Positions 50,034 through 64,000 of a stretch of DNA of 64,000 nucleotides are shown here, one piece after another. The stretch covers positions 496,001-560,000 of the forward strand of contig CBFDEM010000018.1 of NCBI GenBank assembly GCA_965603825.1, written 5' to 3'. This DNA is from Blepharisma stoltei ATCC 30299 (taxonomy: Eukaryota > Protista > Ciliophora). The notes under the pieces were generated by a model, which saw nothing but the letters and a program-made list of their open reading frames with translations, made no database searches and was not told the origin of the DNA. The position numbers and the translations under genes are program-made. Numbering within the stretch: the first letter of the stretch is position 1; every line of letters starts with the position of its first letter.

Positions 50034-50960
50034 ATGCAAATATTTGTAAAAACATTGACTGGCAAAACAATCACTTTAGATGTAGAATCATCAGATACCA
50101 TAGATAATGTTAAGGCAAAGATTCAAGATAAGGAAGGGATTCCTCCAGATCAGCAAAGGCTCATTTTTGCGGGAAAGCAATTAGAAGATGGAAGAACTTT
50201 AGCTGATTACAACATTCAAAAGGAATCAACACTCCATCTTGTGCTAAGGCTTAGAGGAGGAATGCAAATCTTTGTTAAGACCTTGACTGGAAAGACAATT
50301 ACACTTGATGTTGAATCTTCAGACACTATTGACAATGTCAAGGCTAAAATCCAGGATAAAGAAGGAATTCCTCCAGATCAACAAAGACTCATTTTCGCTG
50401 GGAAACAACTGGAAGACGGGAGAACTCTTGCTGACTATAACATTCAAAAAGAATCGACCCTCCACCTTGTACTGCGATTAAGAGGAGGAATGCAAATCTT
50501 CGTTAAAACCTTAACAGGCAAAACAATCACTCTTGACGTAGAGTCATCCGACACTATTGATAATGTAAAGGCTAAAATCCAGGATAAAGAAGGAATTCCT
50601 CCAGATCAACAAAGACTCATTTTTGCAGGGAAGCAGTTAGAAGATGGAAGAACATTGGCTGACTACAACATCCAAAAGGAGTCTACTCTTCACCTTGTGT
50701 TAAGACTTAGAGGAGGGATGCACATCTTTATTAAAACATTGACTGGCAAGACAATTACATTCGATATCGAATCTTCAGACACTATTGGCGACTTCAAAGC
50801 TAAAATTCAAGACAAAGAAGGAGTCCCTCCAGATCATCAAATACTAATTTTCGATGGAAAGCTATTGGAAGACGGGAGAACTCTTTCAGACTACGACATT
50901 CAAAAGGAGTCGACCATTTCATTTGGGATAAGATGCGGATGGGGCTATCGAGCTAATTAA
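50034..50960 (+). CDS. Polyubiquitin: three identical ubiquitins + a divergent fourth unit lacking di-Gly
   Basis: 3x [11 protein letters not shown]...LRLRGG (228-nt units); fourth unit ends [14 protein letters not shown]. Confidence 0.98.
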
Positions 50961-51561
50961 TACTTATTATAATTTCTTTTATGCAAAATTATTAAATATA
51001 TCATTTAAAAATGGAATTTAGATAACAGATTGTAATTGATCTATTATCTGAAGATACTTGAAAATAGACTATCAGCAGTGCAATTAACAGATTTTAATGC
51101 TATTTTGCAGTTATTTAAATTAATGCTACCAATTGAGTGAATAGCTTGATAGCAAAAAAAGAAGTAGCCAGAATAAGTGTCTTGCGTGTTTTTCCCGTAC
51201 TTCAAAGTAAATTTTATCTAAAATGGTGATAAAACCAGTTAATGATTGATAATCCTGTAAATATTGTTATAGATTATTCCTTTACTTAAATCTATTTTTA
51301 TTTTGATATAGATATAATTGAAGTATAGATATTCAAATGATAAATGTTCTTTAAAGATCCACCTTAATGCATATGTGCAATATTTTTTATTGTTTTGATA
51401 TTTAAGCTAAGTTCTTTATTCTTTATTATAGATATTAAAACTTAAATGCAAGATAATAAATTTTATTAGCAATCTGATAAGTTATGCTTAGATAAAACTT
51501 ATGCTTTCAGATCCCAGGCAGTAAATAATAAAAATGTCTAATATAATTCTATAAATTTATT

Positions 51562-53615
51562 ATGATGGAAGAGCTTAAAAAAGCAGTTTATATTCTTGCA
51601 ACACTCAGTCAACATATAGAATTTCCTTTCGAAAATCAAGGCTTAAGCAGAATTATTAAAAATGCTTTTACCTCAGGCATTGATAATGAAAGCCTAAGAA
51701 GATTAATAGGATTAAGCCAAAGCAGCGCCTTTCCTTATGTAAGAGAAATTATTAGATCCCAGAAATGAGAAGATATTTTTGCTTCGCCAAACAAATTGTT
51801 TCAACCATTTCAAGCTTCTGACATGCCTAAAAAAATTGGAAAAGTTGCATTTTTTATTACTTGCACTAATAAAGATTATATAGAGGAAATAGAAGGCTAC
51901 ACTTTAGTTGTAAAACTTTTTCTACCTGCAGGGATTTTAATATGTAAATACGGAGAAGAATGAAAGAATTGTTCATCTCAGATAATAGATATAAATGATA
52001 AGCCTAAAAGCACTTCTATGATTTTTGGCTTTGCTAAAAACTGAGCAGAGATTCCCGAAAATGAAGAAACGGCAGAAAATAAAATGGAAAAAGTTGAAGA
52101 TAAAGAAACAAGAACAGAAACAATTGAAAATAACCCTGAATATTTTGAAGAAAACGATACTAAAAATATAAACGCGGATCAAATAAATGAAAAATTCAAA
52201 CAATTAGAAGAAGAATTATTTAAATGCAAACAAAGCAATGAATGTCTCAAAGCTGAACTAAAAAAAGTAAAACTAGAAAATAAATAGCATGCAATGATAT
52301 TAGTGAAGTAAAAGCAATGACGGAGGATGTGAAAAATTATTTGAATAAAAAAATAGATGAAATTAGTATGGATTTAAAAGAAAGCTTAAATTGTTTAAAA
52401 GAAGGACAGGATAAATGTCAAAAATTTATGGAAAATGTCCTTGAAAATTGTCAAAGTAATTTAAATCAACTTAAGTCTTACAAAAATGACTTCACTAGCT
52501 CAAAAAGTGAACCAAAAAAGAAAAATGACGATTTTTCTTTATCTTTTAATGTTGTTTCTGATTATTTTCAATACATCAATAAAACTGTTCAAGATTACAT
52601 CCAAAAATACAATGAACTGGAAATTAAATACAATTCATTAGTAGATATGTGCAATAAAATAATAATTGAGACTAATAACAAACACTCATCATTAGAGGCG
52701 AAAATTAGTGAAATCGAAGAAAAGACCAAAAAAATTTCAATACCAAATGGAAATGAATTAATTTCAAGCCCGAAAAATGATCCTGACTCAAGAAATATGA
52801 ATAAAAACCCTCCAAAGAGAAAAAAAAAGGGGTTAATCAATATAGGTAACAGTTGTTATATGAATTCAGCTTTACAGATCTTTGCAAGTGTTCCAAGTTT
52901 CATCGAAAATATAAGAAACATTGAAAATGACTTGTTTTATTGTTTAGGTGACATACTATCGTCGATAACAGATCCCTATTCTATAAAAATAGACGAAAAA
53001 TTAAAAAAACTAAGAAGCTTGCTTGCCAACAAATACCCTATGGTAATTTATATTTAGTTTGGTGGAAATACAGAAAATGATTGCAAAGAATTATATGTTA
53101 TCATAATAAATTTATTTATGGAACTTTACCAAAGCGAAATGTTTTTAATAAACAAAAACCAAGCGATAATTTGTGAAAGTAACCACAGGTTAGAATTATC
53201 TGAACATCAACTATTTTTAACTATAACTGATAATGAATTGTCAATTAAAGAGTGGCTAAATCAGCTTGAAAATGAAAAAACAATATTTCATGGAGATAAT
53301 AATTTATTTTGTGAAACTTGTGGGCAGAGATCCGATTCAGAGATGGTGACAGAAAGCATTGAGCCTCATGAAATTTTAGCTTTTTATAATGCTAAAAGTA
53401 AAAACCCGATTGAAAATATTCCTGATTTTGTATCCTTAGGGGAAAATCAGTATGAAATCTTTGGAATAATTTGGTACAATAGAAGCCACTACATAGCTTA
53501 TACAAGAGAAGAGGGAATTTGAAATGAATACAATGATAGCTATGTCACAACAAATAAGCATCCAAATCCAAAAAATATCTATATGCTTTTTTATAAAAAA
53601 GTTATAATTAATTAG
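51562..53615 (+). CDS. USP-family deubiquitinase A (N-terminal degenerate domain + coiled coil + minimal USP); frame break at ~52285; intron 53043-53057
   Basis: GLINIGNSCYMNSALQ (Cys at 52854), ENDCKE, CETC, RSHYIAY...W(TGA)NEYNDS, YMLFYKK. Confidence 0.82.
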
Positions 53616-62624: not shown

Positions 62625-62694
62625 TTCTTCAGCAATGCTTGGAATTCTATAATTTATATACATTTCTTGTAAAAACAATTGTAGAATCCTAAAA

Positions 62695-64000
62695 ATGTCA
62701 AACTCCTCAAATATCCGTGCTGCAATTATTATCATAAAATCGCTCAGTCAGTTTATTGATATTCAAGTCATTCAAAATACCTTCTCAGAATTTATTGATT
62801 TATTACTTAGTGAAGATCCTTTTATTCTAAATCTGAATAATCTTTATAGCAGAATATATCAATGTGGAGATTTATTTAATAAGTCTGTTAGTGACTGCTT
62901 AGAGATTTTAGTAAGCTATTTAGGATGCGCCAATAATTATCAAACAAATTTTGTAGTGATGGATTATCAATGGCCATTTTATTTTAACAAATCAGAGTTA
63001 TATGTAAAAATTGCAAGCTTTACAAATCAATCAGGGCTATTGTATTGCTATTGAGATGGAAAGTGAATGAATTTAGGCATATCCTCTCCTCAGAATACGA
63101 TTAAAGAAAAACCTTATAATGTTTATTGAAAATTCAGAGATCCCTATTATGCTTTAGATGATTTTATATTAAATACAAATCCTTCTCAATTATTATCAGA
63201 CTGGGTTTCAAAAAACCCAAAAAGGACACTAGGCAACACAAACACAATGCCCGCTTTAACTTCCAGTGAATATTTAGCAAGGTTTGAGAAGGAAATCGCT
63301 GAATTGAGGAATCAGGTTCAAATTAAGGATCAAAAGATTCATGAATTAGAAACTGAAAATAAAAATGCAATAGAAGACATGCTTCAACAATTGCAAAGCA
63401 AAAATCAAGTTAACCCATATGCATCCCAAAGCATTAGTTCAATTGTGATAAATAATCCTGTAGAGCTAGTGGCTGCTTTAAAAAGCCCGTCAAAGCATCC
63501 GTTGCCTAATTACGGAAACACTTGTTATTTAAATGCAATAGTCCAAGTCTTAGCAAGTATGAATATTTTCATTATAGAGCTGATAAAAGCGAAAGGCCCA
63601 ACCTTAAAATTGTTAAGAAATTTACTTATAGATATGAGATTGCCAAACAAACGAAATGAAGCCGGTTTAGGGATCAAACAGCTTAAGTATGATCTGAGCA
63701 TTGAATTCCCCAGTGTAATTATAAATTAGCTTAATACCAATGACCAGCAAGACTCAACAGAAGTACTAGGAATGATTTTTAACAAGTTTGAAGAAGAGTT
63801 CCCGAATAGCATCTTATTTGTGACTAATTCTGTTCAGACATTTAAATGCAAGTATCATGACTACAGTAGCATAATTAAAGACTCAGACACTTTTTTAGTA
63901 ATTCCTCCGCTTTTTTACAGCAATGTTGAAGAATACCTTCAAAGTTGAAAAAACCCAACAATTTTCAGCGACAACGATTTATTAAAATGTGACTTATGTG
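62695..64000 (+). CDS. USP paralog E (degenerate N-terminal domain + coil + USP), 3'-truncated by window; intron 63715-63729
   Basis: Track ORFs join via TGA=W; LPNYGNTCYLNAIVQVLAS, DQQDSTE after splicing. Confidence 0.82.

Follow-up and report, generated by a model that had tools for sequence, protein, structure and literature searches.

Genes of the C18 window

Here we describe a stretch of 64,000 nucleotides from the ciliate Blepharisma stoltei (C18:496001-560000; hereafter the window), which from position 50034 to its end carries genes for ubiquitin-like proteins (UBLs) and for short ubiquitin-specific proteases (USPs). The assembly consists of 41.46 Mb in 64 contigs, to which the C-numbers refer. 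Conserved Trp positions in the window read TGA. Only UGA=Trp restored the conserved Trp residues; therefore the standard code, UAR=Gln and other codes were rejected. The introns are 15 nt long with GT-AG borders, and each USP gene has a single one at a position common to all. Introns of this length and UGA for Trp are the expectation for a Blepharisma heterotrich. Gene models were spliced locally using these two rules. Lesions are given as they stand in the assembled sequence, where single-base ones may be assembly errors. All coordinates are collected in Table 1.

Table 1. Features of the C18 cluster and its borders (window positions unless a contig is named)
Feature	Position	Strand	Content and evidence
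Inverted duplication, left arm	49495-50438		3' scraps of RNase H2 and of a neighbouring gene, start of polyubiquitin; blastn 91% over 792 and 167 nt
Polyubiquitin	50034-50960	+	three identical canonical units and a variant fourth unit
USP-A	51562-53615	+	N-terminal pseudo-USP-type domain, coiled coil, short USP with Cys/His/Asp; intron 53043-53057
USP-B, 5' two-thirds	54187-55472	-	pseudogene, several stops and frameshifts; intron 54386-54400
tri-UBL	55637-56344	-	231-nt period; Pfam ubiquitin E=1e-10
'His-box relic', displaced and inverted 3' part of USP-B	56454-56805	+	matches C15:657752-658131 and C11:1165981-1166185
USP-C	56825-58285	+	catalytic domain in frame, Cys/His/Asp; intron 57716-57730
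USP-D	58345-59940	-	intact, 526 aa, Cys to Ser and His to Lys; intron 58888-58902
di-UBL	60373-60793 (open reading frame 60373-60801)	-	ends GG plus the 6-residue tail FIKSKN; pseudogene
USP-E	60934-62771	-	Cys box intact; intron 61407-61421; start codon uncertain
USP-F	62695-64000	+	intact 533-aa gene, ends at window-equivalent 64311; intron 63715-63729
Two intact E2 genes past the window end	C18:560403-560855, C18:561386-561820		follow USP-F
Inverted duplication, far side	C18:569311-571160		intact RNase H2 and neighbour (gene models), decayed polyubiquitin (decayed ubiquitin units)

A sequence-only reading of this DNA had proposed a co-evolving module of UBLs and USPs, to which it also assigned the polyubiquitin. 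The polyubiquitin has the variant tail noted there: its fourth unit differs at 22 positions, including R42I, H68S and V70G, and lacks the di-Gly. Its membership in the module was not upheld. The gene is part of an inverted duplication of the polyubiquitin/RNase H2 junction which brackets the island, and no polyubiquitin lies next to the other clusters described below; probably it is a bystander at the island edge.

Both UBL genes were found. The ubiquitin-like tri-UBL is a recent triplication of an 82-aa UBL gene, the single-copy paralogs of which on C8 and C15 end GG-Phe. Its junctions are without GG, which was removed at the duplication joints, and the last unit ends Lys-Gly-Cys. The reading frame is intact, and dN/dS is not distinguishable from 1. 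The same Lys-Gly-Cys end closes three UBL units, i.e. in the window (55637-55650), on C55 (L012) and at L027:8936-9499; it could represent a second tail class or repeated decay. The di-UBL has the ending seen earlier. It has no start codon, and the first 40 codons of its intact C15 paralog are replaced by other sequence; intact paralogs are located at C15:670323-670868 and on C35. As written, neither window UBL could give rise to a GG-ended modifier.

The sequence-only reading had counted at least seven USP paralogs on both strands, one of them a His-box relic. USP-A to USP-F were confirmed. The relic belongs to USP-B: on C15 and C11, intact genes matched by the USP-B piece (54187-54677) continue into the stretch matched by the relic, so that the window holds six USP genes, not seven. 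As had been suspected, apparently active, dead and decaying copies stand side by side. USP-F has an N-terminal pseudo-USP-type domain, a coiled coil and a complete catalytic triad. USP-D starts with a Cys/His-rich segment followed by a coiled coil; despite its dead active site it is kept in three clusters at a dN/dS of ~0.3. In USP-A a 1-nt deletion near 52281 breaks the gene in two (TAG at 52285-87), and a 428-aa product could restart at 52317; an intact paralog exists at C8:232397-234442. The 5' part of USP-C is frameshifted, with single-base lesions at 56883-57139, and no in-frame start precedes the Cys box. In USP-E a deletion and frameshift near 61210 cuts off the His box; its long low-complexity N-terminus contains a ~280-nt internal direct repeat (61650-62230). 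Thus, USP-A, -B, -C and -E are damaged, and intact in the window are only USP-F with a complete active site, the dead USP-D and the tri-UBL without di-Gly. This copy would supply at most USP-F, USP-D, a shortened USP-A and the tri-UBL, together with the two adjoining E2s. No E1 gene is present in the window itself.

Beyond the E2s one more broken USP is followed by Kelch and TPR genes (C18:560403-563700), and the C8 cluster has similar ones along its inner edge. Elsewhere in the window a RING-type N-terminus is present twice, at 19515-20504 and 21004-21243, ~740 nt apart, as a local tandem duplication.

Related clusters and their gene classes

The genome has about seven clusters of this kind, the window among them, and several are at telomeres; the family further includes genes for E2s and for a UBA1 duplicate on a long branch. 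Short USPs are found together with UBL matches on C8, C9, C11, C12, C15, C35, C55 and C18, and 36 of the 39 genome-wide UBL-profile matches fall inside USP clusters. Thirteen of 14 UBL hits were no more than 10 kb away from a short USP, a zone amounting to 0.9% of the genome; this statistic is overstated because the short-USP list was hand-picked and the clusters are mosaics of one another. Hence, UBL-USP linkage is found at further sites, as the sequence-only reading had anticipated, and the content of the module had been under-called: once the sister clusters and the sequence adjoining the window end are included, E1 and E2 genes of its own belong to it as well. A complete intact set of gene classes is located on C15, and Ubl, E1, E2 and protease genes are together in single loci on C15, C35 and C11. 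Part of C15 recurs on C35, possibly through duplication in the assembly. The detailed gene-by-gene comparison covered cluster genes on contigs other than C9, C35, C38 and C55, with canonical E2s and USPs set aside.

The window segment 56108-59977 is 93% identical to C8, and further blocks are 80-89% identical to C15 and C11. The clusters on C8, C11, C12 and C15 end within ~1 kb of telomeres. The C18 copy is internal, and the bracketing inverted duplication suggests that a block of subtelomeric DNA was inserted here. On its inner side the C15 cluster is bordered by a reverse-transcriptase gene with an endonuclease-like open reading frame upstream (C15:650606-653704). Outside the USP clusters there are several further arrays, in which ubiquitin is fused to variants of itself or divergent UBLs stand in tandem (C2:119-122 kb, C22:9-14 kb, C27:183-205 kb, C35:594-597 kb).

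The predicted fold of the UBLs is the beta-grasp, including that of the 77-aa unit for which it had been proposed (AlphaFold pLDDT 88.7 for a C8 monomer which is 86-92% identical to the window units). The model matched Hub1, ISG15 and SUMO with Z ~12 and TM ~0.8 at 12-22% identity to solved Ubls. The majority of full-length UBL genes end GG or GG plus a tail (C8, C11, C12, C15, C1; CAG9312711.1 is one of the cluster UBLs), and the GG is conserved among UBLs which otherwise are only 20-45% identical. In the window subfamily residue 72 is Gln; Arg42 is kept by no UBL, and I44 is largely kept. An 89%-identical UBL is present in an MMETSP transcriptome.

Of five UBA1-type E1 genes in the genome one is canonical (C28; CAG9321373.1) and four are located in clusters. 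The cluster E1 is intact on C15 (CAG9316463.1) and C35, with all five UBA1 Pfam domains, the catalytic Cys and the ATP-binding residues. The two on C11 (L032:799-3873 and L030:3368-6405) are defective, one lacking the catalytic Cys and the other being frameshifted before the C-terminal part. The Cys-less C11 copy has a dN/dS of 0.26 against the intact one. In quick trees, which were used for all E1 phylogenies, the cluster E1s form a clade within the heterotrich UBA1s, with a stem of ~1 change per site. A position as sister of B. stoltei's own UBA1 was rejected (p=7e-4, long branch); therefore the E1 duplication may be older than the genus Blepharisma. In Stentor coeruleus only canonical UBA1s were seen. 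The C15/C35 E1 changes 18 of 192 near-invariant columns, the canonical B. stoltei UBA1 changes 2. Among the changed residues is the crossover-loop Asp (human D623 by alignment), which is Gln in the cluster E1 and invariant in the other sequences of the alignment. From the alignment to human UBA1 we take this Asp to line the pocket for Arg72. Binding of ubiquitin Arg72 in the acidic crossover-loop pocket is the established specificity filter of E1 (PMC12355090). The UFD, which binds the E2, is the most diverged E1 domain; it is 37% identical to the canonical one and has lost acidic residues.

About 20 E2 matches were found in the clusters; the one compared was closest to UBE2D. Ten cluster E2s were examined. 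All keep HPN and the Cys, and all are without the equivalent of Phe62 (column read from alignments), a key RING-contact residue of E2s (PMC9954413).

The very short, highly diverged catalytic domains reported for the USPs were borne out, with lengths of ~255-270 aa and a median pairwise identity of 31% across clusters. They match Pfam UCH, the triad (Cys/His/Asp) is complete in 20 of 27 domains, and an Atlas model gave TM 0.84-0.87 to USPs. Together the Blepharisma short USPs form one star-like clade. Many are preceded by an N-terminal domain of ~165 residues with weak mutual similarity. In a model of a C12 member (pLDDT 68) ~150 residues of it align to USP catalytic domains; the top 36 rows were all USP-fold (VIA-align, Z 6-9), and Atlas TM was 0.67-0.69. 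The domain is without fingers and, by alignment, also without the catalytic Cys and His. Its assignment as a pseudo-USP is based on VIA-align and Atlas; the profile-profile comparison with the USP domain was not significant (E=0.12) and Foldseek rows were weak. It was extended to USP-A via phmmer links (E ~1e-4) and to USP-F via weaker ones. In order, these proteins look like a dead fingerless USP fold, a coiled coil and a minimal active USP. No description of this three-part architecture was found in the literature. The window contributes three things to the picture of the clusters: the make-up of an internal copy in decay, a USP-B in two pieces, and the pseudo-USP domain.

Giant viruses, too, have stand-alone USPs as small as these (~255 aa). 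Those of the Nucleocytoviricota are the nearest look-alikes of the 255-aa domain (feature score 0.96; 22-30% identity), yet the Blepharisma USPs are a clade of their own and are not nested among them. Within 5 kb of 80 viral USP loci (L050-L129) no E1, E2 or UBL was found. A viral origin of the USPs is not supported by these comparisons, and the likeness may be caused by the common small size.

When metagenomes were scanned with the cluster E1, contigs with 20-22% GC were recovered, three of them with recognisable CCCCAAT telomere repeats. From the telomere repeat and the composition we take them to be presumably of rumen ciliates. On each of these contigs (L042, L044, L045, L046; 8-10 kb) an E1 gene is accompanied by genes for a UBL that ends GG, for an E2 and for two to four USPs. 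The four gene classes on one contig, the GG-ended UBL and the losses of the E1 crossover Asp and of E2 Phe62 are shared with Blepharisma. In contrast, the rumen kits go back to a separate UBA1 duplication, their USP domains are longer and form a separate clade, and a kit contains a single tag and a single E2. In the tree the sister of the rumen E1s is a UBA1 of canonical type from ENA metagenomes, and a single origin with the Blepharisma cluster E1 was rejected (approximately unbiased (AU) test, p=6e-6). We found no paper on such E1+E2+UBL+USP nanochromosomes of rumen ciliates. A profile search of 1.8 billion representatives detected no close UBL relatives outside Blepharisma; the next-best matches were rumen-ciliate UBLs ending Gly-Ala. 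Multi-domain UBLs ending Ile-Gly-Ala, another modifier-like family, were seen on the rumen-ciliate nanochromosomes L037 and L039 (proteins P0233, P0204 and ~10 similar ones).

In B. stoltei paralog pairs of all four gene classes, recent pairs included, are under purifying selection (dN/dS: UBL 0.15-0.17, E1 0.16-0.26, E2 0.12-0.27, USP 0.3-0.6), to which the window tri-UBL is an exception. Such selection, together with the complete intact set on C15 and the UBL transcript in MMETSP, argues against regarding the family in its entirety as a relic, dead or dying, that subtelomeric duplication has spread. The many frameshifts and truncations in the window and elsewhere and the single distinct intact E1 would fit a relic. 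Nevertheless, we consider this highly improbable.

Proposed conjugation pathway and alternatives

We consider it likely that the clusters encode a UBL conjugation pathway of their own, distinct from that of ubiquitin and possibly working without E3s, and that the window is a partly decayed cluster copy. In this pathway a cluster USP would trim the UBL precursor, which has one to three beta-grasp domains and a GG plus short tail, to GG. The cluster E1, a UBA1 duplicate, would adenylate the UBL and form the thioester. The UBE2D-derived cluster E2s would then take over the UBL and couple it to targets, for which a canonical RING or HECT E3 may not be needed. Cluster USPs would remove the UBL again. 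Dead USPs and the N-terminal pseudo-USP domains may act as binders or regulators. We infer the biochemical steps, the E3-independence and the pairing of partners from fold, GG ends, catalytic residues, linkage, selection and altered specificity residues. Of the module originally proposed, lineage-specific UBLs linked to short USPs and a birth-and-death turnover stand; the window copy itself had been over-called.

Several findings weigh against this proposal. A large share of the window genes is pseudogenised, and of the three distinct cluster E1s only one is neither dead nor frameshifted. Since the clusters are segmental copies of each other, linkage within B. stoltei does not count as independent evidence. 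The UBL types of C12, C1 and C55 keep Arg72; therefore those UBLs could still use the canonical UBA1. Finally, no E3 was found in the clusters read (no RING pattern in the predicted proteins, no E3 family in ten neighbouring pieces). Taken together with the missing Phe62 of the cluster E2s, the latter may point to E3-independent transfer, or else an unlinked E3 or one of unusual type may serve the pathway.

All enzymes are from ubiquitin-pathway families, and a canonical polyubiquitin flanks the window copy. Conceivably, then, the genes are an accessory E1/E2/USP set for ordinary ubiquitin, and the UBLs, which largely keep I44 and in the window cannot expose GG, are unconjugated decoys or binding modules co-amplified by chance. 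This we regard as improbable: the Asp of the Arg72 pocket was lost from E1 independently in two lineages, GG was conserved across UBLs of such low identity, and polyubiquitin does not adjoin the other clusters.

As for the purpose of a separate UBL pathway, about 37 USP matches compare with 4 cluster E1 genes, i.e. erasers far outnumber writers. Such an excess would be expected of a selfish or self/non-self module, in which UBL conjugation is harmful and the linked USPs are antidotes; the chemistry would be as proposed above and only the purpose would differ. Mosaic segmental copying, the subtelomeric position and the persistence of E1-less clusters agree with it. However, no transposase or mobility gene was found inside the clusters read (the reverse-transcriptase gene flanks C15), and host defence fits the same pattern. 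The selfish module thus appears about as improbable as the accessory set for ubiquitin. Because ISG15 and the bacterial Bil system serve defence and because the clusters turn over fast, defence against intracellular invaders is the likeliest purpose, an argument by analogy which we put forward tentatively and which falls just short of what we would call probable. Alternatively, the purpose may be selfish, may be self-recognition, or may lie in development.

Comparison with known conjugation systems

To our knowledge, few UBL conjugation pathways have an E1 of their own, and those known to have been added late, ISG15 and FAT10, belong to animals. In a literature search outside subscription journals no description of such a ciliate UBL/E1/E2/USP system was found. 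The vertebrate ISG15 pathway (ISG15, UBA7, UBE2L6, HERC5, USP18) resembles the Blepharisma set in that a UBA1-type E1 duplicate has its own E2, the eraser is of the USP family, and the modifier is a beta-grasp protein, with two-domain forms, made as a GG-plus-tail precursor. It differs in several respects. The Blepharisma E1 nests in heterotrich UBA1s and scored 493 bits to UBA7 versus 665 to UBA1 (UBA7 was compared by bit scores, outside the E1 tree). LRLRGG is not the tail of the Blepharisma UBLs, there are many tags, many E2s and many USPs instead of one of each, and no E3 was found in the clusters read. The Blepharisma genes are physically clustered whereas those of the ISG15 pathway are unlinked.

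In FAT10/UBA6 and NEDD8/NAE, specificity is set at modifier residue 72 and at the E1 crossover loop (PMC12355090). The same sites are altered in the Blepharisma cluster E1 and in the UBL subfamily of the window; the E1 lineages differ, and the UBL has the low identity to solved Ubls given above. The bacterial anti-phage operons BilABCD use a JAB protease and a Ubl with a single conserved Gly (PMC10557695). Like these, the Blepharisma clusters have Ubl, E1, E2 and protease genes in one locus, which is an analogy of organisation, not homology. In contrast to Bil, the proteases are USPs, the tags end GG, and the genes are on both strands and form no operon. Bil genes are not the source of the Blepharisma set, which derives from eukaryotic UBA1, UBE2D and USP.

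With the rumen kits in mind, it is tempting to speculate, with less confidence than in the defence role itself, that ciliates have at least twice built a clustered, E3-independent UBL defence pathway from duplicates of UBA1, UBE2D and USP, which would make it a eukaryotic counterpart of Bil and an independent invention of the ISG15 kind. Blepharisma would then, on the same speculative footing, run several tags in parallel which are read and erased by the three-part USPs. If the pathway is real, a complete clustered set in a free-living protist and an independent one in a second ciliate lineage would mean that such pathways arise repeatedly and that they can be kept together like bacterial defence operons. 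It would open to experiment how a duplicated UBA1 changes its modifier, whether an E2 is able to conjugate with no E3, and whether conjugation-based immunity exists in protists; if orthogonal to ubiquitin, the set could find use as a tagging tool. As judged from its genes, the Blepharisma system would work like ISG15, is organised like Bil and is a member of neither.

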